DNA of 64,000 bases from Styela clava (lineage: Eukaryota), in NCBI RefSeq assembly GCF_964204865.1, contig NC_135254.1, forward strand, positions 6,510,001 through 6,574,000, written 5' to 3'. Below are positions 3,201 through 26,184 of the stretch, piece after piece; the first letter of the stretch is position 1, and every line of letters begins with the position of its first letter. A program made the position numbers and the translations under genes. The notes under the pieces were generated by a model. That model worked only from the letters and a program-made list of their open reading frames with translations. It did not search any database and was not told where the DNA came from.

Positions 3201-6200
3201 TTAGGCTATCGTTGTTGTTAAGCTGAAATCCACCACAATTATCTTTCTGCACAAGAATTAATTGTTGTGATACCATGGGCTTCATTTTTATTTTGCTCCT
3301 AAAACAATTCCTTGAATCAGAAAAAACCAAAATTTCTTTACGCGATCATTGTCATAATCAAATAAACTCCATCAGCCAATGACGAAGATAAGACTGAAAA
3401 TTGTGTTTTTTTTCGAGTTGGTGCTGATTTGATTAAATCTGTCATGCTTTTATTTTTGTTAAGTTGATATCATCAACCTAAATACTCGTATTATGTCATC
3501 AACGACGCCAGGATAACGATGGAATACATGGTAAATACTGCATACTATATAGGAGCTACCGTTGTATATTACGAGAAATGCAAAAAATTCCTGTTTCGTT
3601 ATTATTGGTCACTATCGCAACAAGGAGGAAAATGATTAATTAGGACAGAATTTACTTTTCGATTTATTGCCGTGGCCACGCAGATTATTTTGACCAAGTT
3701 GGAATATACAATAACATTGTTTAACTATTTTAATCAAAAACATTCTTGACTTGTTACAAGCACTTCATGTCAGCACTTATTGAAAATCTTCAATTACGAT
3801 AAAAAATAAAATAATTACAAAATGTTTGGAATCAAATTGTGGATGACATCACTATGTTGTGTGCACGATATTCGGTATTCTTAAAAAACAGAAAATCGAT
3901 GTTCGAAGGTCTCAATATTTGAATATTAAATTCGAATTGGCCATCCCTGCTATGATATCCCAGATATGACATATTGACAAACACGCAATATCGGGCCGAT
4001 ATAACAGTCAAGCTCTAGTGCCGTGGTTCTGTGACTGCGTTTCAGCAATCTAGTCTACCTGTACTGTAAAGTTTCATATTTATTCTACTAGCAGCAAAAT
4101 ACAGCGAAAATACTACAAAGAGTTATTTCAGTTTAGACCTTCCGGAACAAAAAAATTTAATATTTTTTTTCATTACATCTGCACTTTTTTTGCAGTGGTT
4201 TTTAAAAAAATACAAAAAGAAAATTTAGTTTTGCTATCATATTCACAAACAAATTCTGCAAAAACGAGAAGTTGTGAGTATAACAGAACTGTATTTAAAA
4301 TCATTATTCCCTTCTTCATCTCCACTTACTAATGTGAACAATGGTTTTCTACATTACACAACACACGATCGCATGATGTAATTCTGTTCTCTATTAGCGT
4401 ATACAACACGTGGCAGCTAATCTAAATGTTGTCCGAATATATCTATGATTTGTTCTTCAATTGTGTTTTCGGCTTGAAAATTGTAGCGGTTCGCAGTTTC
4501 TTCAGAGAAATGTAAGGGGTCCGCAGGCACGTAAAGTTTGAGATTCACTGTACTATAAGATTCAAAATGTATCACTGTGCAGGCCTCATTACTTTAATTT
4601 CTGTGTTTGCCAAGATATGAGCTATGATTCTTTAGTATGAATACTGTGAAGTTTACTAATTCAATTTTTTACTCGAAAGCAGAAGAACCTCGGATTTCAT
4701 GCCGTATCACACAGGCCATTTGTTTTAATTTTATCTGCTTTATTCTAATATTCTCACTAAAACTGAATTCCTATTTCCTTAAATTTTAGGATAGCTGATG
4801 AAATTTATGTTTTGCAGGATTCCAGAAATTTTTCAAAATATAGATTCAAAAATAGTTTTTAAATTGTATTCAGAATTGTTCAAGTATTTGGTTATAGCCA
4901 TCCCCGATTTGCCCAGTTGCCTGGTTCCACCAAAATGCATTTGAGTGTTTTTCTCTTTATATTTTCATAGGGAAGAGTCTACATATTTCAAGAAAACAGG
5001 ATAAAACAAAAGAAAAATTCACAGAAAAGCCACGCATAACAACCTTGAGATTCCTTGAAAAAGAAATGGAACCCGATATGGCAATTAGGAAGCTTCTGCC
5101 CAAGCAATTCAGAGGATCATTTAAAGACCAAATCTTTGTTCATATTGATATAACGAATGCTGTGAGTGTATAAATTTCCTAAATCAATTGAATCTCAAAA
5201 AAATGTTTTGAAACAATTGGATATCACAATGCCATTTGAATTCCATTTGCAACTTCCAGCTTCCCAATCCTGCAGGTCTGTAAACAAATTTGTTTTAGAT
5301 TAATTGTTGATATACAAATACACACATCGCTATCAATGTCGTTGCCCCATAAGCTTGCAACCTACGTAGGTAAATTAACAAACTGACAAACTGTCAACCC
5401 TTTTTGTCTATACCAAAATGCATCGATTTGAACTATTTTTGCTATGAAATTAGTTTTTTCATTATCCATTCAGCATTTTGAAGTCATCAGTATTTAAATG
5501 ATAAATAGGTTAATACCTATTTTTGCTAGATCTGTGTTATGCAAGCACATTTTTGCTTGGTATAAAAAATTTTAACATCAATCATTTGTTTTAGAAATGA
5601 CATAAGTTCTCCAAAAATTTACAATTTAAATCAATATTTGTACTAGTAAAAATGCTGAATATACAAAATGATCATAACATAAATTCTCACAACCTACAGG
5701 TTAAAAACGGCATAGAAGAATTCCTTTTCAACTTGTTTGTCCTTGGTCGAATTGTTGATAAGTCAGGAAAAGTATGGATAAAGCATCCCAATCAATATTA
5801 CATGATTGAAATCACAGATCAAGATCTTGTTTTTTCAAAGGTACAGCAAATAATATTTGAATGCTACCAAGGACTAATATTGAAAACCACATATTTCAAT
5901 CAAAGGCTCTTTATTTTACAAAACAAGATGTGGAGTAATTGATTGAAAAAGAGTGATCCACTAATAATATTTGCAAGTTTTCCGGGATGGCCAATACCGA
6001 ATAGTTCACTATTTCGAATACGTTCAAAACTATTATTTTCAAATATGAAATTTCTAATACATTCGAAAATAAAATTAAGTAAAAGAAGCTTATCTATAGA
6101 GTATGGAGGAATTTTCATACACAAAACAATCTGGCTACATTACCAGGCATTTCATGTTCTTGATTACTGCGATATATATTTTAGAATAGTAATGCTATTA

Positions 6201-9200
6201 TTTTTTTCCAAGTCGACATAACCATGGATTATGTTAATTAAATTAATACCGCAAGGTGGTAACAGTCAGGGATTTCAATATTTTGGCAAATACAAAAACA
6301 TCCTAGTAAAAAGTCCATAATTTTAAATACCAACCATTATCCAAATTATTTTCCAAAAAAGCGAAATAAAATATAAATCATTTTTCCGACTTGTGACAAT
6401 TTTTCGTGAGTTCGAAAATACGAATCAAAAATTATTTATATTCAGGCACTTTACCACACGTTTTAAGTATTTACTTATAATTATAATAACTTACTTTTAC
6501 TTTCGTTATTTTGTAAATACTAAAACAAGAATCGGAAATTAATTATAACAGGCAGCTTACCACACATTTTGTGTCCACAAATTTCTGTAATATTTCAGAG
6601 TATTAACTACTTTTATTATTTTGTAAATACAAAAATAGGAATCAAAAATTAATAATATTGGGCGGTTTACCGCGCATTTTATGTACACATATTGTTGACG
6701 CCTAATTTACGTTGAACAAATTAAATTAATAGGGCATAAAACTTTTGAATGATGGTAACGGTCATGGATATGAATATTTTCCAAAAAAAAAGTATAAATT
6801 TTTTTCCCTGATAAAGTGATAAATCGACTTGTTCTTGCGACTTGAGACTATTTATTGGGTAGCATAACAATTTCGACGTTAAATAATTTTCAATTTTTTA
6901 TTGTTATGAAAGTGAATGTATAAATTAGAAGCCTTGTAGGGGAGTGGCGTCAATGTCCACCATGCAACCGTGCAAAGGTGTCGCAACAATATGCGACGCA
7001 CGCTCTCACAGAATATCAACAATTAAAGTGCCGATTCTATTTTATCCTTAGTACAATACGCGCTGGAAGGCAAAAATTCGTTCAAGTTTCCTGCAAAAAC
7101 AAAACTCTGTGTTTACGACAAAAAGTGGCTCAAAATCGAAAATCAGTTTTGATATTTGAATACATTCGAATATTCGATTCATTTTGGACAACTCTGTCTG
7201 TAAGCTACGTTATTGATAAGGCTGGAGAGAAGGAAAGAGTGAGAACTATTTGCATGAAATTGAATGACTCGATAGAAAGGCTGTATGATAGTTCCAATTC
7301 CTATATTGATGTTAAATAACTTCTTAGTACGAGATCAAATAAAAAAAATAATGAAATATGAAAAATAATAGTTGGCTTTACCTGTTTTAGACTCCCAATC
7401 GAGCCCAATTTTGTATACCCATTTTTATTCATGTCATACGACCCCCAAAATTTACCCAATATACAATAATTATATATCATTGGAAAGGTCTTTTAGAGTA
7501 CTATATAGATGTCACTAGAGGACCGTAAATTAAAATTCGTGTTTCGTGTGGTCTCTCGTGACGTCAAAAAATAACAAAAATATTTCACTCCATCATTCTA
7601 TCAGCTGTTGGACGTGTATAGCTCTTGTAAAGCTCAAATGAGACTATACAGTTGACTGTACATTGGTTTCCTCTTTGATATGATACTAAACGCTTTTCGA
7701 TGGCGCTCGTCGTTCATGCGTTTTGGAAATTTTCCGTTTGAGAATTCACCACATCGAATCAGGCCAGGCTAAGCTTGATCGATCGATCGGTTGTTTGTTT
7801 GTGCTTTATCGCGTTGAAAGCTTTTGTGATTCATAATAAAACATTTATTAACCGTTGTGAGATGGCCACTCTTCTATGTTATGTAGCATATAAAATGACC
7901 TTCAAATTAAGACCTTATCATACTAGATTTTGTTATTGGTTAGCGCGCAACGCCAAGGTTTATTGGATTATATTCTTGTTGTGCGACGTTTTTCTATCGC
8001 AGCGGGAAGTACACGCGTGAAATGTAAGCGATATTTTAGTACTTCCGAATGTCACATAACGTTCTTTCTTATATTGCTGGGTAGGAAATGAGCTATTCTT
8101 CCAAACAAGACCATAACAAACATTCCAGACCTCATGGTTTACACAAAACCTCTGAAATATCACAAATGTTCCTGACAGACGAAAGCAGGTTGAGTGATCA
8201 TGGTTTGGCTTATGAAATGTCTCCTTTTTCTGTAATAAATATGATACTAGCTTGCCTTTGGCACATTTAATTTGTATGAAGTCTTTTTAAATAAACTATT
8301 TTATTTGAAAATTTGTCTAGAACACATATCTAACATGCTACACCAGGTGGGCCAACCTGCTTTTGACTGCAATTGACTAAAACTTCAATATAGCTAGCGA
8401 TCGACTAATTGGTAATAAAGTACCGCAATGCCCAAACACGAATGAGTACTAAATATGCAGATATCTGCTCATCCACATACAAAAATTTTACCGCTGTCAA
8501 CAAACTTGGCTCTATGAAAAATGCCTCAAAAAATTTTTTATGTTCCATTTACTTTGTTAATTTGGTTATGTAATTGTACTTAATTCGATTAATTTGGATC
8601 ATACAATTCAGGACACACAGTATTTGATACGTTCATTTTTAAACCTTAGCAGCATAGAAACTTTCATTTGTTACATAGTAATAGGCTCTAATGGGCTTGT
8701 CTAGACTCAAACACTATATGTGTAAATCTACACTACATCAAGGGATGAATATTCTTAATATGAAAGTGGCATTCAGTAATTTATTGTAACTATACCTTAC
8801 TTTTTTTATTTCAGCACTCAGAGATTTCAATGCTTAATCTATTTCCTTGCACAATGGCACTTCAACCCCAAGAAGTTATCAGTTCAACGTTCAGTAATAA
8901 CGATAACACACTTGCAATGGATTCTAAAATGTTCGTGTCAACTGTTTTTCAACGACCCTACCAGTACTTGAAGCATTACAAAGAAGACTTAGAAGCGGAA
9001 GCAGCAAAAAAGGAAGGAAAGAAGTTATTAGATAAATTTAAGTATATTGAAAATAAGCTGTATGGGACAGAAGAAGAATGTATCGAAATAATGTTGGAAT
9101 ATTGTGGAGTGAATGCATCATGGGCCCAGATCAAGCATTTTGTGACTTTTCTTGACTCTCAGCTCAGGTTGTGTGAGATTTGGTATAAAGAAAATAAAAA

Positions 9201-12200
9201 ATTGATAGAGAATGTCAAAAGCTTTATGATGAAGTACATGATTAGCATGGGCAAACGATTTATAGGCATATTCAACAATGAAGAGAGCCGTTCTTCAGGC
9301 AAGCTTAAACCCTTTATTTTTTTTCATAAAACAAATGTGAACAAAAAAGAAGAAGTTTATATTACATTCATTAATGTCAAGTTAGTTTCACCAAATCTCC
9401 TCGATAATGAAGAAACCAAACTACTAACATTTTCAATCAAAGAATTAGATAAAAAAGATAAAAAATTCCATATAGTGAACCAATTTGATAATTGGGATAG
9501 ACCAAGACAGCTTAGTGTTTTGAGATCGGCAACAAATGCTCCCTTCAAATGTCAAGACCCTGACCCTACTTACAAGCTGACTACAGATAATTTGCAAAAA
9601 ATCATTTCATTGAATATGAGAATCCAGTATAAAATTCCTATGGTGATAGAAGGAGAAACTGGATGTGGAAAAACAAGGATGGTAGAATTTCTTAGTAAAC
9701 TTAAAGCATTGAATGAAAATGCTAGAGTTTTGATCACAAGAAAAGTATATGGTGGTGTTACTGCCTCTGATATTCAGGAAAGTGTCAAAGAAGCAGAGAA
9801 GGTATGGTCACAAAGTGAAACGGACCAGGACATGAGACTGCTTTTTTTTGATGAAGCAAATACAACAGAAGCCATATACGCAATTAAAGAGGTGATGTGT
9901 GACAATACATTCGATGGAGAAGTAGTGGCTATGGAAAACATAACAATTATCGCTGCATGTAACCCACATAGAAAAATGTCAAACACTTCTATAAAGCATC
10001 TTGAGTCTTGTGGACTAGGAAGCAAAATCCATGCAAATCAAACCGATGAAAAAAGTGGTAGTGGAATGCGACATCTATTGTACAAAGTGTTACCACTTCC
10101 TCCTAGTATGGAACCTTATGTTTGGGTCATGGAACAAGCTGATGAAAGTACTGAACAACTTTATATTCAGCAGATTGCCAAAAATATTACTCGTGATCCT
10201 GTGAATCAAATCAATGATGTTGAAACCAAGGTTATTAGCAATCTTGTGTTTGAGGCTCAAAAGTTCATCAAAGTTAAAAATCAAAGTAATGAGTTTAGAA
10301 TAGTCAGTTTGCGCGATGTGGAACGATGCATGGAAGTATTTAAGTGGTTTCATGAGCATAGTGAAGTACTTTTTCCATTACTTGATGTGGAAAAATCTAA
10401 AACCTATGAAAGACTTCCAGTCATTGAAGCAGGTGCACGCAAAATAATTCATGCAATTAATGTTTGCTATCACGCCTCCCTGCAACACAATAGATCAAAG
10501 TTTAGAATAAAGATAAGTGAGACATTAACAAAACTTGGTGTTTCAAAGTGGACTGAGAATGACTTATTGCAAGAATTTTTAGCCTGCCAAAGAGTTTTCT
10601 TACTTCAAGCACAAATTCAAAGTAGTTCAGAGAATATTTCATACAATCAAGCTCTGATGGAAAATTTCTTTATGATGGTCGTCTGTGTAGACTTGAGAAT
10701 TCCTCTTTTCGTCATTGGAAAACCGGGCAGTTCCAAATCCTTGGCAAAGACACTAGTGTCAAATTGCATGAGAGGAAGATTCTCAGACTCAAAGCTTTTC
10801 GTTGGATTAAAACAGGTGTGTGAGTCTCTGTATACATAAAAGAAAATGAGTAATAAGTAACTCTTATTAACATTAGATATATTCTGCAGGCGAATTTGAT
10901 GTCCTACCAGTGTAGTGCTTTATCAGACGCTGCTGGAATTATCCACACATTTGAGCAATGTTGCGAAATGCAAGAAAACAATGATTCAAATACATTTACA
11001 TCCGTAGCTGTGCTGGATGAAATTGGTCTTGCAGAAGATTCACCGGCTATGCCACTCAAGGTAGGTTCTCTATCATATACGTCACATAAAGCAATAATAT
11101 GTATTTCAAATGAGTTTACAAATTAAAGATTATGAACATCATAGGCCAAAGAATATCATGTTCAAACGTCATTGGCATCACGTACACTATGCTTTTTTGC
11201 AGAATACAATTGATCTAGACACTTTGTTAGTGTCCAGTCCAGAGCCTTTTTAAATCAGATTTTTTGAGATAAATACTACTTTTATGCTCGTTTAAACTCA
11301 AAGCATAGAATAGTTAATAAATTGAGGCAATATTAAAGCATAATGAATTACTTTTCAGGTTCTTCATCCATTACTTGAATTTGGAAACATGAAAAGTAAC
11401 GAACGAGGACATCAAGTTGCATTTCTTGGTTTATCAAACTGGCCACTTGACCCTGCAAAACTGAACAGAGGTGTTTTTCTTCTTCATGAAGATCCAAATG
11501 AAGCAGATTTAATAAGAACTGCTTCAGACATCTGCGCCATCAATGAGCAAAGTCATCCCAAAGCTAAAGAAGTTTTGAGAGTTTTAACAAAAGTATATTC
11601 GAAAATAATGAAGGACATAAAAAACATGAGATTTTTTGGTCTTAGAGATTTTTACAGTCTTATAAAAGCATGCAATGGTCACTTTGGTGATCCTAAATCA
11701 TTATTCAATGCAGTAGCAAGAAATTTTGGAGGCAAGGAATCAGGTATACCCGAGGAATTCAAAAAACAAATTTGTAGCATTTTTCCAGACTCGGAACTTT
11801 CTCTAATGGCAATAAATGAGGTAGTGCAGACTAATCTTGGTGAAACCGACAGTCGATACTTGCTTCTTCTAACTAATTATTATCCTTCTATAAACCTTGT
11901 TACATTGGTTGTAGAAGATTTTACCAAGATGAAAGTCATCATCGGCTCCAGCTTTCCAGGAGATCAAAATTTTGCTGAGATATGCAGAAATATACATGAA
12001 GTAAAGACTTGCATGGAAACAGGAACACCTGTGGTAATGCTAAATCTTGCTGAAATTCAAGAATCCTTGTATGACGCTCTGAATCAACATTACAACACTC
12101 TTGGCGGAAAGCGGTATGTGGACATAGGATTGGGAGGGCAAAGATTGAAATGCTGTGTTTCTAAAACATTCCGATTGATATTACTTGAACAAAAAGATAA

Positions 12201-15200
12201 AGCTTATACAGAATATCCAATACCACTGCTTAATCGTCTGGAAAAGCATTTATTAGATTCAGATGCATTATTGCCAGAATCAGAATGGGATAAAATGGCA
12301 GAAGTCCAAAAATGGACGGAGTTATTTGTAAGAGATGACTTCCAAATACCAGATTCTTTGGTAGGTCATCAAAAAGATACAGTGAGCTCAACTCTGCTAT
12401 TGTACCCAGACAAGGAAGAATGTAAAGAAATATTACTCCAATCTGCAACTTTGGATGCAATGTACAGAATCGAAAAAAATATCACTGACCTTGATCAAAT
12501 GAAAAAGTTACACAGTACCTATTTTGAAAAACAAAGTCACCATGACCTGACAGACTTCTTGCACCAGACTGTGCGATCATTAGGACTTCAAGAACAAATA
12601 TCTATCAACATGTTTGAAGTTGTATCTTACTCTGGTAGCCTTGTAGGTAATGATCGTGAGCAGTTGGAAAAAAATCTGAATTTGAAAGAATATGATGTCA
12701 TGATACTCAATGTTAGACAATATTATACACTCAGAGAGTTCGAACACGATCTTGAAATATTCTCACAAGATTGCAAGGATTACAAGCAGGACACTTCTAA
12801 GAAGATAAATACTAAAATATTAGTATTGCAGTGTCCCCAGGCCCACAAGTATGCAAAGCTAATCGAATGTGCAAAGCATGCCTGGTCTAATAAAGATAAA
12901 AAAGGAATTTCAGTGAACATTATTGTTATTGTTCTGTGGTCCATTGAAAGAAATGCGGATTTTTTTATGCAACAATCACGAGACAACAGAATTATCTATG
13001 TCGATGAAGTAAGACCCTCGCAAATTGATGAAATTGAAACTGTTGGAACCGAAAATGAAAATGTTTTCTCTATTAAAACATTGTTGAGTACAGATCTCAC
13101 CAACCTATTTGATCCGAAAAATGCAAATAACAAATCCATGAAACGGTTTTTAAAAGATTGTCTCAGCAAGGCAATGGCTAAAATTGAAGGCTCTCATAGT
13201 GCAGCCACACGCTACAAAGAAAGAGTAAAAACCCTAACAAAGCTTCTGCATCTTGATGAGGACACAGACAAAAATTTTCGGGCCATATTTCTAGACAAGA
13301 TACATGAAATTCTAGTGACTGAGGATACCTTGAAAAGCAATAATTGGATTCATGCTGTGGCAAATGATAAAAAGAGCTTACAAGAAGGAGGAACGTTTCA
13401 TAAAGCTCTGCTTTTGTATTTGAAGACACTGATATCAAACTTGTTAGCTCACTTCATTTGTAATATTGATGTTCAGTGCAATTTGAATCTTATCGACAAA
13501 TATTCTGATATTAATCAACAAAATGGAGATCGAAAAGAAAACATATGGCTAAGTATGTTTGAAAAGTTGCCGTTTGATAATCGGAGAAGCATAAGACTGA
13601 ACTGGATGCATAAAGAATTCATAGCTGTAAGTCCCATTACTGAATGTCCTTCTTTGGCATGTAAGTTCCCATTCAGGTTTGTGGTTACTGACGTTTTGCG
13701 ACCACATTTAAATTCACAACAAGAATCGAGTTTGGTAGATATTTTCAGACAGAACAATTTATATCCTGTTATCAAAAACGGAATCTCACTATACCCAGAG
13801 TTAATAAATGATTATGTGCATGATTTGGTCAATAGCCACTACACACCAAGTTCTGAAGAACATCTAGAAACTGAAGTTGAAGCTGTTATTGGAATCGTCA
13901 AGAAAAAAATGTTTAAAGATGGAGACAATGTGGAACATGGAGATGAACTTGCACTTGTTTATTCTGCTTTCAATGACTTAAAAAAGAAACTGAAAATATT
14001 GAGGGAAATATTTAGAGTTTGCCCACTTGTGGCTAAGTCTATTAATGAAGAAATCATGAAAAATTCTTGGGATTGGCATGCTGGAGATGTACACTATTGG
14101 GGGATGTTAATAGCTATAAAGGATCTTAGACAAAAAACTACATCTTTTTCAAAATATCCAAAAAATTGTGTGTCCTGGTTGGAGCAAGCCAAGAGTATGG
14201 AAAAAACCGTTTATCTCGTATATGATTGTATACAAGTAAAAAAAAAAAAAGATGATCTGATGAAGGAATGGTTACCAATATCTCTACTCAGAGTCTTGCT
14301 CCTACAGTTGATTCCCAGCGATGAATACAGATATAAATACATCAAAGTAATAGCTAATTCTGCTGAATTGCTAGTTTCTGTTCCAGATGAAAACAACATT
14401 GAAGATTTTACTACCATTGTATGCAATAGTATTGGAAAATGCTATGGGGATTTGGAAATGAAATTACTTCTATCATGGGGATCATTGGATTGCAAAAACT
14501 GCGATGAGGAAATGGAAGATCCCCAACGTCTATTATGCGGACACTTTCTTTGCCTACAATGCTGTGAAAAGATGCTTGCAGAGGAATCACCCAAATGTCC
14601 TCAGTGCCTAAGCAATATTCAAAAATATGAGGCTGCTAGGCTACCCAACGAAGATCAAGAAAAATTACAACATTTTCAGTACAGTTGTACCAGCTTTTTT
14701 GTTGATTTTTTAAAGAATATTTGTTTTTCATCTGTCATGAAACCTGTCGACAAAGAAGAAAAAAAATCCTTAATCAAACTAATCTTCACACTGCTTATTC
14801 AGACTGACATGAATGAAAGTGAAAGGAAATTGGAATCATCCGCTATTGGATCTGATATAAACACAAAAGCTTGCATATTTGGAGTATTAGTGACGAATGA
14901 GCGGGTAATTGTCACTGATGAAGTTAACGAAATATTGCAGCAGCAGGGTGGTGATGAAAAAAGAAAAATTTCACAATTCATAATATATCACTTTGAACAA
15001 CAATTGCTCCTTAAAAACGGTGATTCAGTTAACATGCAAAAATTGGAAAAAGAAAGCTTAATACTGAAGTCACAAAAATTGACCTTTGAAACATTAGAAG
15101 CAATAGCTACTTTGAGAAATGCATGCAGAGTCTTAGCCAATCAGTTCTACCGGAAAAGCAATAAGAGTGAAGTTTCAAACATGGATGATTTTATTGATAA

Positions 15201-18200
15201 CTTCATTGATTTTTGCAAACGCTGCAAAATAATTGATGTGAAGCAGCTTGTCGTCAAAGCTGGATGTGAACAATTCGGTACTGACTGGTACAGACAGATG
15301 TTGAAATCTGAAGTAGCCAAAGTAAGAAAATAATTTGTTATATGCACAATTTGCTTTATTCTTTGTATATATAAAATTAGTCAAAATACATTTTACTAGT
15401 AATCACCAATAACCTATGTATGGCCCATTCAAATGTAAATTTTCCTTTGCATCCTTCGATTTTAAATTTTCTCACCAAATTGCAGTTTTATTATCTCTTT
15501 CCAGTGATCACCTATGACTTAAAGTTGACCTTCTTATGTGCAATACCTTATTACCTCAGGCAAATTCTCATGAAAAATCGCCATCAAACTTATAACACTC
15601 TTTTAATTTGCAGAGATTAATCCCTAATAACTGGAAAGATCTGTTGGCTGAGTATGACAAAACCCCTTGGCTTCTCTTTGATGAAATATTGGCCGAAGAG
15701 GAGGGCGGCTTCAGAAAACCTATACAAGGATATGCTGATTTTATTTCTGAACTTGCAGCTAAACCACCAAGCCGAAACAAACTGTACTACTCGGTGAGAA
15801 GAAAGTATCAACAAGGCCTAGATCTGACCAGAATTACCATCGATGATGTAGAATTTTCCATCTTTAAAGAAACGGATGACAAACTTGTTTCTCTATTCAA
15901 AAATATAAAATCAATCACAAATTCAAGAGAGCGTGGCTTTGTCCAATTACTTGTGATGTCATTAGCAACAACCTTGAGGAAAAGTTGCTATATGATGTCC
16001 GGCTTTGCCCAGTTTGCATTCAAACCAGGTCAAACTAGTAGGCTATCTTTACCAACCATGTTTGCTGAAAAATTCGATCCAAACTTCGAAGATGCCACCT
16101 TAATCATAACCTTCATACTACATGCCAGTATACTGATCGGTTTTACTAATAATGAACAGGCTGTTATAACGTGAGTTTATTATATTTATACAAAACTTAC
16201 ATTAATCTACAATTTCGCTTGAAGATAAAATTTATTTAAACAACCTTATGGCAAAAATCTGCAATAACGAGGAGTCTAGCAACCCATATAATTACGGTAT
16301 CCGACACAGAATGCAATTTTGGACGGGGTGGTCAGAGGTGCAACGGCGTGCGAAGTGTTTTCTTAATATTTTCATGGCTGATAAATTTTTATTTGACGAT
16401 TTTGCAATTGGGTATATTTCTATATGTGGTATGATATTGACAATTTTGAAAGTCTGTTCCGGCTAAATAAATTGTAATAAAACACTTCCTTCAATGCAAG
16501 AATGAATGAAAATGAAATCAGCATTGAATTGCTCAAAAATTTCTAAAAAAAAAATTAGGATTAGAAATATTGCTCTTTTATGTTATCTATATCTTTTTGT
16601 TAATGATAAATACCTCTGTTTCAGCATGCTCAGTCGGTCAACTAGGACACATGAATTGAACAACTATCTAACAAAAGAGCTTTTTTCAATTTTGCTAAAA
16701 TTGAAAAGGATGTGGAGGATGAATATGAATGAAACTGTACTGATTATTCACCACATCCTAGAACAAATATGGGATACTAAGGTTTGAATCATTTATTCAA
16801 CTACTTGCTATGTGTTGTTGAGTGGATTATCTAACAATGTTGGCATCTGAGCTTCAATATTTTGTGATTAACCACAATCACATACCTCACTCAGGGTGTA
16901 ATAAAATGGGAAGGCTACAAACATGAGATATTTTAGCCTGTTATTTTTCTAAAGCCTTGTTCATAGCAAAATTATGGAACATTTTCCAAAATTGTAAACA
17001 AAAAGGGAATAAGTAATTATGAAAGTAATATACAAATATTTCCTATTAATTATGGATACAAAAGTTTTATAGTATATGATCCGAACTAACCAGAATAATA
17101 ACTTACGGCAGAGGCGCAGCAAGCGAGGGAGGGGGGGGGGGGGGGGGATGGGGGTCGGGGGTTACTTTGGACATAAGTTTCTGCAAGGTGAAGTAGAGCG
17201 TTGTCTTCAACACAATTTTGGTACTTTTTCGGATTTTATTGCGTGTAAAAAAAAAATTGGCGTAGACTAGGCAGATGGGAAGCCGTCATTTTTCGTTGCT
17301 GGGAGCAATAGCGAAATCTAGTTTCAAATACTTCCTATCATACTGCCTACTAAAGTCTCCCTTTTGTTATTTTCTTGTTTCCATATCAACATTGCTGCAA
17401 GGTCGTTTCGAGGCAATTGTAAAGTTAAAGTAGGAGTCTCTTGCTCTGTCCTGTCAACACCTGACATGGCGTCATTACTTTGTATATTGCAATTTTTTAT
17501 AATATATTAATATTGGAATGTATTTGACGGACTGGCAGCAAGGTTGCCACGGACCGGCGGTTGGTACCACTGGTTTGGACCGAATTAGCTTCAAATAAAA
17601 ATCAATTAGTATAAATTCTACTTATTTATTAGATAAAAATATTGCTGTATGAAGTTAAAAAACATTGCCCATGATTAGGGTTTGATTTAGATCAGACATG
17701 GGCAATCTACGGCCTGCAGGCCAGATCCGGCCCGTTGGGTAATTCAATCTGGCCCGCCAAATGCTGCCACAATGACGCCAAAGCCAAATTTAGATGTTTA
17801 AGTTAAAACTAACTGGAATTTGTTAAGATTGCGATTAAACTTAGTTTTGAAACAAGGCTCATTATTTTACACCTTTGCTTTAGTAACACTTCAAATATGT
17901 TCATACAATGTAACTTTTACGTCTCACTTACATGGTCCGACAGTCTAGATGGGCAAAAGCCTCAGGTCCAGAAACCTTGCCCACCCCTGATTTAGATCAT
18001 TAACTATCTCTTCATTACCAGGTGGTGATTTTTTTGGCAGGGAGGATTTCTGACTGTGTCTCAGTTCTTTATGCACAGCATCATTTCAGATTTGCATATG
18101 TGAATTTTGCAATTGTTTATAAGATATGACATACCTCGTTTGAGAAATCTCTTACCTAACTACTACACTTCAAAAAATGGAAATCTTTTTGATTTATCAA

Positions 18201-21200
18201 ATCAACCTAAGGCAATTACAACTTGGGCAAAAACTGCATTGTTCTAATATGGTTAAAACTTTTGCAGTCTCATCCAGGCATGGAAAAATTTGACTGGATA
18301 ACATCAGAAGGGAGATTTAGATGGAAAACCGATTTTCGAGAAAAATACCTGTCTTATGTTCTAAACTCTATCGACAATACTCTGAAGAACCTTAAGGCTG
18401 AGAAAAAACGTCATCTCTCGCAATCTAACTTATTTAAGTATGTGAACAAATGGTGAAAGTAGGTTAAATTGGTATCATTCAATGCATGCAAATTTAGGAA
18501 TGACGTTGGAATGAATTCTATCCCTTTTTCGATTTCCACTCGCCTTGAAAACGGATTTAAATGCAATCCGCAAATTGTTGTGTAACTGCTGAAAATTGCA
18601 AAAAAAATCAATCTATCATTGTCTTTGCATTCCATGTAAAATAATTATTATTTTTGGACAACAATCACAAATAATTGTGTTTTTGTCTGTTAACAATTAT
18701 ATCAATGGTATATTTTCAAAGTTGGAAACATCTTTGTCTGGTTTTCTGCTTAGTTTGCTTTTCTTGTAATATATTCATATAATCTTGATCTTTGTGAGTT
18801 TTCTGGCTGAGAAGCATAATATTGTGGATGTGGTAAAGTGCATGCAATTGGCTATGCAAGAGATAAAGTATTTATGTCCTAACTTATTAGAAAATCTTGT
18901 GAAAACCCCCATCCAGTTCAGTCTAATTTGGCATGAAAGTAGTTCAATTTGTTCCAGAAATAAATGAGTTAAAAAAATGCGGAGTTAAAAGTTGAAATTT
19001 AAACTTAAAGAAACTTGAAGATGAAATTAAGCATATTTTAGCATTATTGAGGCTTGTTTGGTTATATTTTCACAGGTTTTTGCATGATTGTAATATGTCT
19101 GATCATGACGTGGTTGAAAACCTGCTGTGGAAAAGAGAATCACTTTGCTGCTATACTGAGCTTTGTTGCTTTGAACGACTCTTGCAAGTTTTAGATGAAT
19201 CAAATAAAAGTAAGAATTTTTTTTTAAATTAGCAACAATCTATATATTATATTATTTGTATTTTCAGTTTAAAATCACTAAATCCATTTTACACTTTGTT
19301 GACATACTTTGAGATGTGCAAAACCATAAATTTGAAATTCTATAAATTTGAATTATGACATTTCTAACATCTAACCTGAAATAAATACCAAAGGTATAAT
19401 TGAAATCTGGTGGCCCCTCTTTCAGATGCCAGTACAGCTTGTGAAATAGTTGTTCACTCAATCATTTTAAATGCATCAACTTCAAGTCCATGCATCTGAT
19501 AAATATGTGAATCGTATCCTGCAAATTCTCACTTGGATGGGTAAATAACGTAGTCGGGGTGATCAACTGAAATGCTGAGGAGTCCAGTAATTCTGTTACA
19601 TTGATGATTAAGAATAAGATAATAAACTGCAAACCAACGCAGAATAGACATTGGTGCATTAACAAACATGCTTTGCATTGTGCAGTATTGCTTGCAATGC
19701 ATTGAACTCCTTCTTTCTGATGAATCAACAATACAATACATAGTTGAGTTGGAAAGGTTTATTTTGCAATCGAAAATAAAATGTGGACCGCGTATACTAA
19801 TAAAAAACTTTATTTCCGTGACAGGGAGCATTCTCAAAAGTGTACTAACTACGGAAAATTTGGATCTCATTGAAGGATTGGAGACTGTGCTGAAACTACA
19901 TTATATTTTGATAAAAAGGTTATATTAATCATTTTTATACAATCAAAATTTTCAAGAGTTATTGGGGAATATGCTAGCCTCAGTAGTATTTGGCCCTTCA
20001 GTATCTTTCGTAACTTTGCTCATAGACCACTGACCTTTATTTCTGTGTGGGTGCTCGTCACCCGATTTGAGCAAATTTCCTTAAAATGAAACACAATTTT
20101 CCTCTATCTGAATTAATATTTTTTTGTTACGGAAAGTTATGTTGCATTGCTGGGCTCTTTGTGCAGTTAATGTAATAAAATATGTTGTTCTAAACTTTCA
20201 AAACTTGTTCATCTGAAAAAAGGTTTTTGTTGTCAAACTTGATATGCTGTGGACTCTCGCTGGTTGAATAAACAGTATGTACAAAACTATTCAAGTTAGG
20301 AACTTGAACAACTTCAAGTCTGCTCTAACTACTAGTCAATTAGTATTTACTGATGTACAGTTATACAGGGTTTTTCAAAAGTAAGTATACACTCATCATT
20401 TTGTAATAAAAGGTACTCAGATTCTTTTCAGGTACTCATCATAGATTGTTCACTTCTCGTTCGTTCAAAACATAGTATGGTAAAGTTTAAGTATTGTTCG
20501 CATTTTTCATCAACCCACAGAATGACGAGGAGATTAATCTAATAAATGAGGTGCAAAATTTCTGTTTGTCAAAAAGCATATAAATCGGTAAGGCAAACTT
20601 AGCGCATTTTTTACCTTGTCATTCTGTGGGTTGATGAAAAATGCAAACAATACCTAAATTTTACGACTTATCCATTCTTTTTTTTTTGAAGAAATGAACG
20701 ATCTATGATGAGTACCTGAAAAGCAAAGCAAAATTAAAGTGTAAACTTACTTTTGAGGCACCCTGTACATTTTACAGAATGCCAGTAATCGTATCAGTAC
20801 CTCTTGACACTACAGTTGTAGCCTGGCTGTAACTTTGCTCAAAGATCAACTTCCTATATTTCTGAGTTCGTGACCTTGCCTTGAGGAAATTTCCTTTTAA
20901 AAAATAATAAACGTGGTCGATAATTTTTATATATTTATTTTTGGGGAAATATAATATCACAATATTCAATTAATTCAATCAGAGTTTAAGCATGTATACA
21001 TTTTGTGGAGTAATACGAGTGGAGTTTACTTATCGTGTGACATATACTGACGTATACTTATGGAAGTACAAACAAATATATACATATCTCTCTGTATTTT
21101 CTCCAAGGTGCCAAGGATTTTTGTCATACGAAGAAGCTGAAACTGGAGAATTAAAAAATTATTTGAAAAATAATGAAGAAGTACAAATAGCGAAAATCTA

Positions 21201-24200
21201 TATTGACCTTTGGAATGAGGTATTACTAATGATGTCAAAAATAATATAAAGATTCTTAAGGAAGAGTCAATACGATGACTTAATATCATATGGTTTATGG
21301 CAAAATACAACTTCATGTCTTGAATTGTTCGGTCCTCTTACGCATGATCTTCGTTTCTTCAGTTCAAACTTGTGTCTCTTTCTTATGGTACTCGGCGGCA
21401 CAAAAGCAGGAGTTTTCTAAATATTTAATTGGAATAATTTTTTTTTTCAGACAGTACCGACCCTTAAATCAAAATCTGCGGCACATGCTTTGCTTGCAGA
21501 CCATATTCATACAGTGACTCTAGATAGCCCGGTGGCTATGTTTCTACCAAGCAATATTGGACAAGGACAATGTGCAAAGATGTTTGCAGAATATCTTATT
21601 GACGTACAAAACACTCTTATTGATAAATGCAAAGTCTCTGAAAATATTACTTGCGAGTATGTTCCTAAATGATGGTGGTTCATTTTATATAATATTGTGA
21701 TCCTTCTATAGCATTCTATATTTGTTTAATAGCATGATGTTTTGATAGCATAAATCGATACAATTTGGTCATTGTACCTTAAAAAATATATTTAAATTTC
21801 AGTCCTACCTGCTATAAATCCGTAAACTTTCATTGTCCTAAGTCGCCTAATTTTTTGATGTAGAAATCGGTATTTTCAATAAAAAATAGGGTTTTAAAGT
21901 TTTTTAACACAATGCTTAAGTTTTTGCTCAATGCTATAGTTTTTTAACACAAATTTTCTTTATCCTGGATACAAATTCAAAATTATTCCAATCTGGAGTT
22001 TGAATCAATATGTTTGTCTATTTGGAGTAATGGGTATAGAAATGTGGTCATGCTAGTAAATGTGTGTAAGCAAGTTATGAGTATCATGAGATTGGTGGTA
22101 TAATATCGGTGGAAAGCATGATTTTACCATTAGATATATTCTGCATTAGTCATATTGTGGTATAACACCAGCAAGAAAGAATGAATCCACTGTTATATTC
22201 ACAGGTTCAATGAAATTGATGTCAGTGATGTTACAAGTGCTCATTTGATATGTATAGAGAAGCATCGTGACATTCTTCCTTTGATACAAACTCATGCTGT
22301 TTACACGATTGAAGTGGATGAGTTTGGGAAGCATCACAATGTTATATACAAGCTTGATATCTTGGAGAAACTGGTAAAAAACACCAAATCTTTTTGAAAA
22401 GTGAATAAATAAAGAACAAATAAATAAAAGTACATCTTCAATGCAGTTTAAATAAACCATTCTAAATTTTTTTATTTCTTTTTTGTTCTATTTGGTATTG
22501 GGATACATTTTCCCAGAAAGTCTAAACTTTCAAAAGTCTTGCACCAAATTTTCACAAAATTTAGCTTTAATCTGCTTGTCCAACTAAATCTGACTATGAT
22601 AAGATAAAACATAGAATAAAATTTGTATAAATGTGATAAATGATTCATATATTACTGAATTTTATACATATTGCTTTCAAGTTAGGACTTGAAATACTTG
22701 ACAAAGTATAATGTTAAATGTGCAATTTGAATATTTTGACAGGTGGAAGTCAGATATTTGAAAGATAAAAGAATTATCAGAAAAAAGGTAAAAGTAGTAT
22801 TTTATATTGAATATTTTTTTACAAAAATTAGGTTGAAAGAGTACCTTAGTTAAAAATAAACTATATTATTTAACATTAAAAATTATATTTTTTAGACATT
22901 GCCTCGAATCTGGTACAGCAGTATCACCGGTATGGAGAGCGACTGGAGTGGCGTTATTTCAAACAATGAACAAGTAAGAAAGTCCTCAAAAAACTTTCAG
23001 ACACTTTTTCAATTTCATTTAGAAATTAAAAGATATTGATTGCACTCATTTTTTACAACAGTTAAAATGACATTGTGATGCAGATAGCTTAGTGCAGTGG
23101 TTCCCAAACATTTAAAAAAAAAAAATTCCATGGCGGACACCTTGCAATTTTTTAATGATTCTCGGCCTTGTGCTTCAAAACAAAACATTAGAAGATCACA
23201 ACAAAAAACCAATGCACCGTATAGTGAAACAAACAAAAAAATATAAAGCGCAACTCTAATGGCATGTGTGACATCCAGTCATTTTCGATATTTGGTAAAC
23301 GTGAAAAAGGAGATTCTTCAGTTGATTCCGTTTCCCAACTGAAGAATATCCCCCTCCCCCAATCCATCTGAGCCGATAATACCAGTTGATCCTTTATTCG
23401 ACCTGGTGCATACCAGTTGATCCTTCATTTCACCTGGACTAATTATTTGGTAGGGTTAGATGGTCTTAGTTGGGGTGGAGATTCTACAGTTGGTCTAACT
23501 TGGGGTGGAGATTCTTCAGTTGGGTTACCGGGGGGAGATTCTTCAGTTGATCCTTTTTTTTTAAATGTATTGACCTGATGGTGGAGGTAGCCACTATTTG
23601 ACGGTGAAGAATCTATCAATTCTTTCCTGTCATGCAAACCCACGCATGGCAATCGCAGGTGCAAAGACAAGTGTATTTCTAACTCTAAGCATGATGCGCC
23701 ACCGAACGTGAATAAATTTTGACTTTATTATATTATTTCGTAAATTTTGATTCCACAGAAGGAGTTGTCTGTCATTTTGAAGATGCAGGCTGATGGCTTA
23801 GCGTCATATTCCTCAATCGTGTACTCAGCTGTGAGATCTCTTGAGGATGGAATTAGGCGATTGGCAACGGTACGTTGCTTATAAATCAGTTATATTAATA
23901 TACTTCTATAATTTAAATTTGAGATGTTCGTTTCCATGCGATCATTAAGGTAATGTGAATTATGTCACCTTAATTCCGCCTAAAGGTGTAGGTTTTAATT
24001 TTGTTTAATGCAGAGAATACCAACGAAGTGCGACGATACAATTTTTATGATACCTCCCAAATAACTGGCGGTATTGGCATATTTTTTGGCATAAATCAGT
24101 TCACATACCAGTAGCAGTCATGTATAACTGTGGTAAAAATTTCCTTTCCAGGTGCATATGGAACCCAAAATGAGATTGAAACTATTTCTGGAAGAAGAAT

Positions 24201-26184
24201 GCAAGATATCTTCTTCTGAGCTGGAAGGAATTCCCTCAACGGCTAACATTGAGCACACATTGGCATTATACTCGAGACTGTCTTGGCATCGTTCTAAACT
24301 GTATTTCTCTCGTGGACTTGATCCATATTCTGAAATACTTCCAGAAGGTATATTTCTGATGTATAAAAATTTTCGGACTTCCAGAAGTATGTGCCCCAAG
24401 ATGGCGCAAAACCTGAACATAGTATGTGTACCAGGTTGGGATTCAGGTTGTGCGCGGAAGCGCCAAATTTTCTCATAGCCAGCTCTATATGTATCTACCT
24501 AAATAAAATGAATGAAAAAAGAAAAGGAATTCAATTTAAAAATGAAATAAATCAAATGAGGTAATAAGTTGGATAGTTCAGAATAGATATCCAATCAAAT
24601 GAATGAGGTCTTTTGAATCAACATAATATGACCATCAAACTACAAAATTCAGACAGAGGGTAGAAAATAGTACCGGTAGGTATAAAAACAAACAGCAGCA
24701 GGAATATTTACCACTGCAGCAGGCTTGTCAAAAAACTTTGATAGTTTGCATATTTTTTTGCTAACAAGCTATACATGTTGCATAGGTTCTCAAGAAGCAG
24801 TAAAAATTGAACCCAAAGATGAACCAATAAAAAAACCCGAAGATGAAGCAGGAAAAGACAAATCCATAATCGATAACAAAGAAGAGATAAAATATAAATC
24901 CACACACGATAAGCTGAATGAATTACTACAATCCAAAGATATCAATGTTTGTCAACAGCACATAAATGAAGTAATAATTCGTTTGCCTGGCACTTCTCCA
25001 GAAAAAGGGTAATTGAAATTAACTTCAGAACATTAATTTTTGATAATAATAATTTGAAGAGAATGAAGTATGTTTGAAAATGTTATTTATAAATCATATA
25101 TAAGAACTGGAGTGGGCAAGGTTCTCGAACCACGGGCCAAAAATTTTGCCCACCTAGATCAGTGTGCTGTAAAAAGTTACATTTTACGATCAATATTTTT
25201 AGTGTTACAAAAGCAAAAGTGGAAAACAATAAGCCACGTGTTAAAACCAAATTTAATCGCAATCTCACAAATTCCTTGAGCTATTTTTTTAGATAAAATA
25301 TCATAATTTTGTTTTACCTTAGTGGTGGCAGCATCGGGTGGGCCAAACTAAATTACTATTTTGTCATGTTCATTGAGGTATTTTTGCAGTCATGCAGACA
25401 TCTTTTCTCGTTAGCTATCAGTAAAAGTGCTGGTATTTTTTTAGTATCCGACTATTACTAATCTTAACTTAATATATAGTGTCCAACTTTTTCCCAGAAA
25501 CGTTAAAATAAAAGTGCCGGAAAAGCATTGCTTCAAAATAATTTAGTAGGTAGTTCACCTGTTCTATAAATAACAAGTTGTATTTTTGCTATGCAGCGTC
25601 ATCCAGCGATGCTGTTCTCGCATAAAAACATTTCGCGCTGTGCAAATTTTGTAGTTTAAGCTAAGTTGTAAGTTTTAAATGTGCCGCTGACAAGAACGCC
25701 GAATGGTTATTTCGTTGATATCCTGTTCATTTGGTACAACTATTTTATGATCTTTCTTGATTTTATTTTTTTCACCGGAATGGCTAAGAAAAACGATTTA
25801 ATTGATTGATTGATTACCCAACGGGATGGATTTGACCCACGGTCCATAGTTCGCTCATGTCAGTATTAGAATCACACAATATTTTAGACTGAAACATACC
25901 ACCTTTTTTTTTTCAAAAACCAAAAAATATTTGAAGCTGATCTTGATTTATTCGTTTGTTTGTTATTAGGTCACTGACTCAGGGTTTTTCAATAAAATGT
26001 ATGAATATATATATATATATTTATATTGTGTTTCAGGCTTGCGAAAGATGTGTTTCCACATGTCAAATCTCCATTTCTCAATCAAGTCAAAATCACACAA
26101 TGGTATTCAGAATTATCTGATGATATTCGTTTCAAGCACATTTCTTTTTTATTCAAGCAGACGATGAAGTTTCAACCTAAATAA
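221..26184 (+). CDS. RNF213: RNF213/mysterin-like AAA+ ATPase / RING E3 ligase, 5'-partial, 21 exons, ~3,060 aa visible
   Basis: Phase-consistent exon chain: 221-384, 949-1105, 4971-5161, 5700-5840, 8815-10815, 10890-11060, 11359-15321, 15614-16170, 16625-16781, 18268-18437, 19076-19209, 19825-19918, 21108-21219, 21451-21656, 22205-22373, 22743-22787, 22896-22973, 23759-23869, 24152-24347, 24786-25008, 26037-26184 (TAA). Motifs recognised from RNF213: VGAGKS, GETGCGKT, FFDEANT, SLRDVER, GKPGSSKS, VLDEIGLAEDSPAMPLK, LDPAKLNRG, FFGLRDFYSLIK, GSSFPGD, LYDALNQ, PLLNRLEKH, C3HC4 RING. Symbol denotes the family; orthology is not established. Confidence 0.93.
1433..1718 (+). mobile_element. Helentron/HINE-like non-autonomous element, copy 1
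   Basis: About 285 bp homologous to 45074-45385 (opposite strand). ACAG/ACAA microsatellite near the 3' end; subterminal ACTTA(T/C)CGAT motif at both ends. Confidence 0.6.
2794..4017. mobile_element. hAT-like non-autonomous element with nested fragments
   Basis: Termini TAGAGCT...AGCTCTA, CCGATA subterminal repeats, near-duplicated flank GTGCCG(G/T). Confidence 0.55.
5982..7196. mobile_element. Degenerate TIR element with internal ~115-bp tandem repeats
   Basis: Imperfect inverted ends rich in TCGAATA. Three diverged direct units (GAATC..AAATTA..GGC..TTACC.C.C.TTTT) at about 6420-6690. Confidence 0.42.
7381..8189 (+). mobile_element. piggyBac-like non-autonomous element, copy 1
   Basis: Imperfect TIRs CCTGTTTTAGACT / CCTGCTTTCGTCT, flanks TTTA and TTGA (degenerate TTAA). 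Extensive identity to 38318-39251 in inverted orientation; lacks about 125 bp present in copy 2. Confidence 0.7.
8815..10815 (+). CDS. RNF213: RNF213-like large exon (2,001 nt): AAA3 module and AAA4 Walker A
   Basis: Acceptor tttcag|CAC at 8815, donor CAG|gtgtgt at 10816. Matches ORF 8830-10839. GETGCGKT at 9652-9675, GKPGSSKS at 10717-10740. Confidence 0.93.
11359..15321 (+). CDS. RNF213: RNF213-like giant exon (3,963 nt): AAA4-AAA6 region, E3 scaffold and RING
   Basis: Acceptor ttttcag|GTT at 11359, donor AAA|gtaaga at 15322. Matches ORF 11389-15333. Confidence 0.93.
14491..14607 (+). other. C3HC4 RING finger domain within the RNF213-like CDS
   Basis: CKNC-x11-CGH-x2-C-x2-C-x11-CPQC; all eight Zn ligands present. 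Confidence 0.92.
17693..17989. mobile_element. hAT-type MITE
   Basis: CAGACATGGGCAA...TTGCCCACCCCTG with exact 8-bp TSD ATTTAGAT. Confidence 0.82.
20366..20765. mobile_element. Tc1/mariner-type foldback MITE
   Basis: TA|CAGGGT..TCAAAAGTAAGT ... ACTTACTTTTGAGGCACCCTG|TA. Inverted arms extend well over 100 bp (CATTTTTCATCAACCCACAGAATGAC / GTCATTCTGTGGGTTGATGAAAAATG). Confidence 0.85.
23308..23553. repeat. Cluster of ~30-bp direct and inverted repeats (GGAGATTCTTCAGTTG core)
   Basis: Core at about 23309, 23477, 23507 and 23534, with an inverted copy at about 23337. Duplicated ATACCAGTTGATCCTT at about 23380 and 23410. Probably transposon subterminal repeats. Confidence 0.65.

Follow-up and report, generated by a model that had tools for sequence, protein, structure and literature searches.

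The window analyzed here, a 64-kb stretch of the 377-Mb Styela clava genome (contig C5, positions 6510001-6574000), contains part of a gene for an RNF213-type E3 ubiquitin ligase, in which the exon that carries the RZ zinc finger in other RNF213 genes is present without that finger (Table 1). The database protein encoded in the window, P0001 (NCBI XP_077968507.1), is annotated as 'E3 ubiquitin-protein ligase rnf213-alpha-like [Styela clava]', and tblastn places it on the genome in 14 exons that end at 26181. Searches against the PDB agree with this name. The open reading frame (ORF) at 8830-10839 matches mouse and human RNF213 structures at E 3e-122, aligning to mouse residues 2325-2763, and the 1314-codon open frame at 11389-15333, with a C3HC4 RING inside it, matches RNF213 structures at E 4e-98. 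In addition, three stretches in the C-terminal part of P0001 match RNF213 in the PDB, and a protein search with this part returns RNF213 of fish, Saccoglossus, and Patella. By its PDB matches, the gene is clearly a homologue of RNF213.

Table 1. Features of the RNF213-type gene, in window coordinates.
Feature	Position	Strand	Evidence
Four small exons upstream	~223-384, 928-1110, 4970-5164, 5700-5852	+	tblastn of P0004; borders approximate
Large exon, AAA3 module and AAA4 Walker A	8800..10815	+	PDB match, Pfam AAA_5/AAA; donor GT at 10816
57-codon exon, AAA4 Walker B VAVLDEIGLAE	10890..11060	+	splice sites, translation, 98% identity to P0004
Big exon: rest of AAA ring, hinge, E3 back, RING	11359..15321	+	stop-free frame; donor 15321 in a spliced contig
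RING finger C3HC4, 8/8 zinc ligands	14491..14607	+	Pfam zf-C3HC4_3, E 3.8e-5, 23.8 bits
E3-shell exon, RZ-bearing in other RNF213 genes; here 185 codons without RZ	15614..16170	+	
Deletion site: LPTM, 13 residues, FILHASILIG helix	16049..16140	+	MAFFT with 7 RZ-bearing paralogues; profile against mouse RNF213
13 downstream exons: rest of E3 shell and C-terminal domain	16625..26181	+	tblastn of P0001

The gene begins upstream of the window. P0004 (3441 aa), taken from an older annotation, is an allele of a neighboring copy that we call C5b, with which it is 98.8% identical. Its tblastn mapping is collinear and nearly gap-free over aa 11-3440, from C5:6479038 through window position 14250 (junction borders are approximate), which puts ~1,550 N-terminal codons of the window gene ahead of the window, starting at C5:6479038. 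Together with the P0001 mapping, this implies ~4,600 codons for the window gene, over which its reading frame looks intact.

The domains outside the RZ site are kept, as a sequence-only reading of this DNA had claimed for the frame, both flanks of the RZ site, and the AAA motor. The large exon reads GETGCGKT and FFDE for Walker A and Walker B of AAA3, and GKPGSSKS for Walker A of AAA4; together with the LDE of the following exon, the Walker motifs of both AAA modules are retained. The RING score lies below the 27-bit cut-off of zf-C3HC4_3, and the Pfam RING models at E 4e-5 are thus sub-gathering matches. Downstream of the RZ-site exon, where the exons include 16625-16779, 18266-18437, and 19076-19208 and the last is 26038-26181, the remainder of the E3 shell is retained, as is the C-terminal domain, which docks the ubiquitin-conjugating enzyme (E2): residues 1333-1967 of P0001 (635 aa) align with P0005, an RZ-bearing paralogue, at 29% identity (E 4e-76).

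The exon at issue runs from an acceptor cAG ending at 15613 to a donor GTGAGT starting at 16171. Both by direct reading and in the ORF list, its translation ends ...SRLSLPTM-FAEKFDPNFEDAT-LIITFILHASILIG, and no Cys or His is found between LPTM and the H of FILH, in agreement with the sequence-only reading, which had noted that no zinc cluster follows LPTM. Specifically, positions 16040-16099 encode R-L-S-L-P-T-M-F-A-E-K-F-D-P-N-F-E-D-A-T, followed by LIITFILHASILIGFTNNEQAVI; the L codon of LPTM begins at 16049, and the deletion point lies directly after the Met codon at 16058-16060. When this exon is aligned with RZ-bearing paralogues by MAFFT, a single clean gap of 85 columns (83 residues in L001) appears between LPxM and the DP.DR/FILH helix, and the same single gap is seen in C5b and in a third copy, C5c. 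BLASTP of P0001 against P0005 likewise leaves 134 and 219 residues, respectively, unaligned at the RZ site, a difference of 85, and the number of residues missing from the window gene can be put at ~83-85. Since the gap is single and clean against RZ-bearing paralogues of the same genome, it is not a chance feature. The sequence-only reading had proposed that the RZ was replaced by a 13-aa linker. The module is indeed gone, but FAEKFDPNFEDAT is not a new linker: it aligns with the paralogues' own pre-helix ..DP.DR.. segment, so that, on this alignment, the RZ loss is a pure in-frame deletion of ~250 bp within one exon and not a replacement. An AlphaFold2 model of the 185-aa exon, computed with alignment A1, was all-helical with a mean pLDDT (predicted local distance difference test) of 50, a confidence too low for use.

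The position of the gap was compared with that of the finger in the remaining RNF213-like genes of the genome. Using the conserved 504-residue segment encoded at 11389-12900 as the query, we found at least 13 such genes, in 10 of which an RZ match lies 2.9-3.8 kb downstream of the segment, exactly at the gap of the window gene. The three copies without RZ are the window gene itself (C5a), C5b (6614-6619 kb, minus strand), and C5c (6828-6832 kb, plus strand). A single open frame in the copies with the RZ reads LPxMPE, ~20 residues, CPNGH, GEC, CxxC, IGGxxH, SQAGY, DP.DR, and FILHxCML.G; that is, the RZ of the paralogues shares an exon with its flanks and does not occupy an exon of its own. The window exon alone is too divergent for alignment with vertebrate RNF213 (its PDB matches were fatty-acid-binding proteins only, which we rejected as spurious), and a profile of the paralogues was used instead. 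This profile matches mouse RNF213 at E 5e-54 and shows the RZ to lie exactly in the interval that FLPTMPE and the LLTHLAMLVG helix bound, which is also where the sequence-only reading had located it. The paralogue finger aligns to mouse YTCPRGHPCSVGECGRPMQESTCLDCGLPVGGLNH, and, with the chain offset applied, its residues correspond to mouse C4451, H4455, C4462, C4471, C4474, and H4483, which are the zinc ligands, nucleophile, and general base of the RZ (PMC12075652). The deleted stretch equals mouse ~4430-4511 and covers the entire RZ domain (4433-4499). According to this correspondence, the window gene has lost all four zinc ligands, the catalytic Cys (mouse C4462, human C4516), and the general-base His (mouse H4483, human H4537).

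No hidden RZ was found. A genome-wide search with the PF20173 (ZnF_RZ-type) profile yielded 12 sites, none of them in the window, and a local RZ hidden Markov model run over all six frames of the 64-kb window reached at best 5 bits, compared with 63-83 bits for the positive controls. At the protein level, Pfam detects the RZ in P0005 but not in P0001 or in P0003, an RZ-less protein from the older S. clava annotation. The claim that nothing resembling CPNGH or an RZ occurs in the gene is borne out by these searches.

Several further features of the family were recorded during this survey. Besides C5, RNF213-like genes of S. clava lie on contigs C4, C6, C8, C13, C14, and C18 (loci L001-L010 and L016-L025), and some are very recent duplicates, with C4c and C4d 99% identical and C4b and the C14 copy 98% identical on different contigs. 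C4c and C4d (L010:1315-2181 and L008:1315-2181, both on the minus strand) have a variant RZ, in which CPNGH has become CACGY, with the loss of the His ligand and the gain of an extra Cys; after IGG, Tyr or Ser takes the place of the general-base His, and the catalytic cysteine of GxC is kept. In C5c (L013:27-1322, plus strand), the first zinc-ligand pair of the RING is C-x-C instead of C-x2-C, and the RZ-site exon has no LPTM motif. P0003 is only 89-93% identical to C5b (L012/L014), which suggests that the assembly lacks another RZ-less copy or a strongly divergent haplotype. In P0004, Pfam detects no CARD at E <= 1. Outside tunicates, the RNF213-like model P0021 of Sinanodonta woodiana, a bivalve, has a CARD Pfam match and no RZ; an RNF213 expansion has been described in symbiotic bivalves (PMC9993606). 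The fish models P0029, P0051, and P0052 also lack the RZ, with garbled sequence at the RZ site, and are apparently annotation errors or missed exons.

Evidence at the transcript level, which covers the window copy, comes from two studies, through the assembled contigs of their runs X1 (2018) and X2 (2020). These contigs lie only on exons and contain the GT..AG joints 15321>15614, 16170>16625, 16779>18266, and 18437>19076, the first two of which agree with the splice sites of the 15614-16170 exon and with its earlier description as one continuous exon. Contigs from X1 (15738-16170) and X2 (15886-16170) cover the RZ-site exon with zero differences and no internal joint, and one 813-nt contig equals 15738-16170 joined to 16625-16779 and 18266-18437, again with zero differences. 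A DNA run, X6, spans the introns without joints. Because spliced contigs cross it unbroken, the RZ-site exon is continuous in transcripts, with no extra exon spliced nearby. Two observations concern the intron at 16779>18266. Positions 17574-17961 are a high-copy repeat with a summed contig depth of ~3100 in X6, against ~11 in the flanks; the depth is raised in the RNA-like runs too, and many contigs end loosely there. At 17130, in a Gly-rich low-complexity stretch, one X6 DNA contig carries a GGG insertion polymorphism.

The history of the deletion was examined with a maximum-likelihood tree of the 504-residue segment. C5a, C5b, and C5c form one clade (support 100/99; 95 with more taxa), which is nested within the tunicate-type RNF213 expansion; RNF213 of vertebrates, hemichordates, molluscs, and cnidarians falls outside. 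Since the three RZ-less genes form one clade, the tree indicates that the RZ was lost once, in a common ancestor of the three, which today lie within 350 kb on C5, and that duplications followed. The sequence-only reading had proposed an RZ-less RNF213 paralogue here; this part stands, but the gene is not a lone case, being one of three clustered copies descended from one old deletion. The age of the loss follows from the divergence of C5c, which is ~2 substitutions per site away from C5a. We also searched for relatives outside the assembly. Among 1.84 billion representatives, the window exon retrieved only P0001 itself and P0002, which is repetitive and probably spurious, and a profile of the three RZ-less exons retrieved nothing at E <= 0.001 from a 5.8-billion collection, a weak negative given that candidates were limited to 102-324 aa. 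The tree places P0006, an ENA protein, as the sister of the RZ-less clade. Like P0007, it was called from one exon and ends before the RZ site (the two were taken from ENA and Logan).

To characterize the present constraint on these genes, we computed the ratio of nonsynonymous to synonymous substitution rates (dN/dS) between C5a and C5b. The AAA-proximal segment gives 0.22, the stretch between the RING and the end of its exon 0.23, and the RZ-site exon 0.34, next to 0.18-0.33 in the conserved segment of RZ-bearing pairs. Because these values resemble those of the RZ-bearing pairs, constraint is normal at present, and the window copy and its closest sister, C5b, are under purifying selection. 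An extra relaxation of the RZ-site exon was considered and rejected, as the flanks outpace the AAA segment in every paralogue pair, which makes the 59% identity of this exon between C5a and C5b unremarkable.

Altogether, these results leave little room for two explanations under which the absence of the RZ would carry no biological meaning. The RZ might be encoded elsewhere, in an alternative exon or in sequence lost to assembly collapse, such that the real protein has one; several fish RNF213 database models do lack the RZ, apparently through missed exons. However, the flanks of the RZ site are contiguous in genomic DNA, in the 2024 DNA contigs, in the 2018 and 2020 spliced contigs, and in proteins of the older annotation; the six frames of the 64 kb hold no RZ coding potential; and the RZ of the paralogues is not a separate exon that could have been missed. 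The sequence-only reading had judged a missed exon unlikely, and at the available resolution this explanation is already refuted and hardly credible. The RZ loss might instead have inactivated the genes, leaving a decaying pseudogene cluster, which the lost catalytic domain, the long branches of the clade, and the 5'-truncated RefSeq model would fit. Against this, open frames of 1,314-1,357 codons persist in all three RZ-less copies although the deletion predates a divergence of ~2 substitutions per site, and exons are collinear over ~4,600 codons (the small N-terminal ones being mapped by tblastn only). Moreover, dN/dS is 0.22-0.34 with the RZ-site exon included, and spliced transcripts occur in two studies, so that neither the decay nor the silence named beforehand as signs of a pseudogene is seen. 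For C5a and C5b, the pseudogene explanation is largely refuted, and we regard it as very improbable overall.

The explanation that we favor, to which we assign a probability of roughly 80%, is that the window holds most of a full-length RNF213-type gene that underwent a single old RZ deletion and is expressed and selected for a non-RZ role. In mouse and human RNF213, deletion of the RZ or mutation of its cysteine (mouse C4462) abolishes autoubiquitylation and lipid A ubiquitylation, and the C-terminal domain is the docking site of the ubiquitin-charged E2 (E2~Ub) (PMC12075652). RZ mutants do not ubiquitylate Salmonella, Listeria, or Toxoplasma vacuoles, yet ATPase-dependent coats of these mutants continue to assemble on Toxoplasma vacuoles, and such coats grow by cooperative incorporation (PMC11549300). 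Deletion of the RING, unlike RZ loss, does not abolish ubiquitylation (PMC12075652, PMC11549300). Given that the nucleophile is deleted, and by analogy with these mammalian delta-RZ mutants, the RZ-less proteins of C5 are predicted to be incapable of RZ-type E2-to-E3 transthiolation. An old in-frame deletion of ~250 bp in one exon removed the entire RZ, and its three descendants keep long frames. The proteins would retain both active ATPase sites, as well as the RING and the C-terminal domain on which the E2 docks. The likeliest role would then be that of an ATP-driven, non-RZ member of the expanded RNF213 repertoire (at least 13 genes), which would bind targets or enter RNF213 coats as a subunit or regulator beside its RZ-bearing paralogues; RING-dependent ligase activity would be a second possibility.

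Both roles can be stated more sharply, at a lower probability. A tentative version is that the C5 clade is a natural pseudo-ligase RNF213, i.e., an ATP-driven sensor or coat subunit without ubiquitin transfer of its own, which may form assemblies with its RZ-bearing paralogues, recruit them, or restrain them. We consider it doubtful that the RING became the working E3 center after the RZ loss, turning the protein into a conventional RING E3 coupled to an AAA motor. All eight RING ligands are present in C5a and C5b, the C-terminal domain is retained, and the mammalian RING, when isolated, shows activity in vitro (PMC11549300). However, mammals have no known bona fide substrate of the RING (PMC11549300). 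The RING of C5a and C5b is identical at 27 of 39 residues, no higher than the surrounding 68%, and C5a has an Asn at a usually hydrophobic E2-contact position, while C5c carries the C-x-C first ligand pair. The last two features also weaken a RING-dependent variant of the explanation that we favor.

Other observations also count against a full-length, expressed, and selected gene with a non-RZ role. The assignment of X1 and X2 to RNA is a guess, for which their spliced joints argue and without which these joints would be hard to explain; the contigs give no expression level and do not link the AAA exons to the same transcript. The RefSeq model P0001 begins at an internal ATG at 11806, downstream of AAA3 and AAA4, and is probably truncated at its 5' end, because the upstream AAA3/AAA4 exons appear undamaged and match P0004 collinearly. 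The branches of the clade are long, with a path of 1.85 substitutions per site to C5a compared with 0.4-1.0 for the RZ-bearing copies, which may leave room for relaxed constraint in the past. The two database searches for relatives outside the assembly returned no orthologue of known RZ state in another species, which is weak evidence. Finally, a coat-subunit or regulator role in a tunicate would be an extrapolation from mammals.

To our knowledge, every activity firmly assigned to RNF213 in mammals runs through the RZ finger, including autoubiquitylation, lipid A/lipopolysaccharide ubiquitylation, and the ubiquitin coats on bacteria and parasite vacuoles. The RZ-less clade may be viewed as a separation-of-function allele made by evolution, in which ATPase motifs, RING, and C-terminal domain are kept under purifying selection. 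That the RZ was lost long ago and the rest was retained argues that the remaining machine does something worth keeping, and the clade offers a concrete protein in which to seek RZ-independent functions of RNF213. If the pseudo-ligase version were true, the chassis of AAA, stalk, RING, and C-terminal domain would have a function under selection that does not depend on RZ chemistry. Expanded families commonly lose a catalytic module in one of their branches, and the present case is limited to a lineage-specific paralogue of a non-model animal. It also contributes to the view that RNF213 forms a large and diversifying family (at least 13 genes, variant-RZ members among them) in a chordate without adaptive immunity.

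Compared with known systems, the gene is closest in plan to mouse and human RNF213 (mysterin; 6TAX, 7OIK, 8S24). It shares with them the dynein-like AAA core, in which AAA3 and AAA4 have Walker motifs, the same order of RING, E3 shell, and C-terminal domain, and the LPTM motif and L(L/I)xH..ML.G helix that flank the RZ site. It differs in lacking the segment equivalent to mouse ~4430-4511 with the catalytic Cys4462, in its low identity within the E3 module, and in belonging to a set of at least 13 paralogues rather than one or two genes. ZNFX1 is relevant only as a second carrier of the RZ ubiquitin-transfer module; as a helicase of different architecture, it has nothing in common with an RZ-less gene. 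The RZ-bearing Styela paralogues (P0005, L001-L005, and L007-L010) share the genome, the family expansion, and the exon context, with 40-45% identity in the conserved segment, but they keep CPNGH..GEC..CxxC..IGGxxH, apart from the variant fingers of C4c and C4d. A literature search found no description of a natural RZ-less RNF213, and the nearest counterparts are engineered: in the delta-RZ, C4462/C4516, and H4509A mutants (PMC12075652, PMC11549300), the same module is missing or dead, with AAA, RING, and C-terminal domain intact. Whereas these mutants are loss-of-function tools, the Styela form is natural, old, duplicated, and selected; they nevertheless provide the best available model of what the RZ-less Styela protein cannot do. 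On the sequence comparisons made here, the window gene is an RZ-less, RNF213-derived paralogue, that is, an RNF213 by descent from which one defining feature, the RZ finger, is absent.

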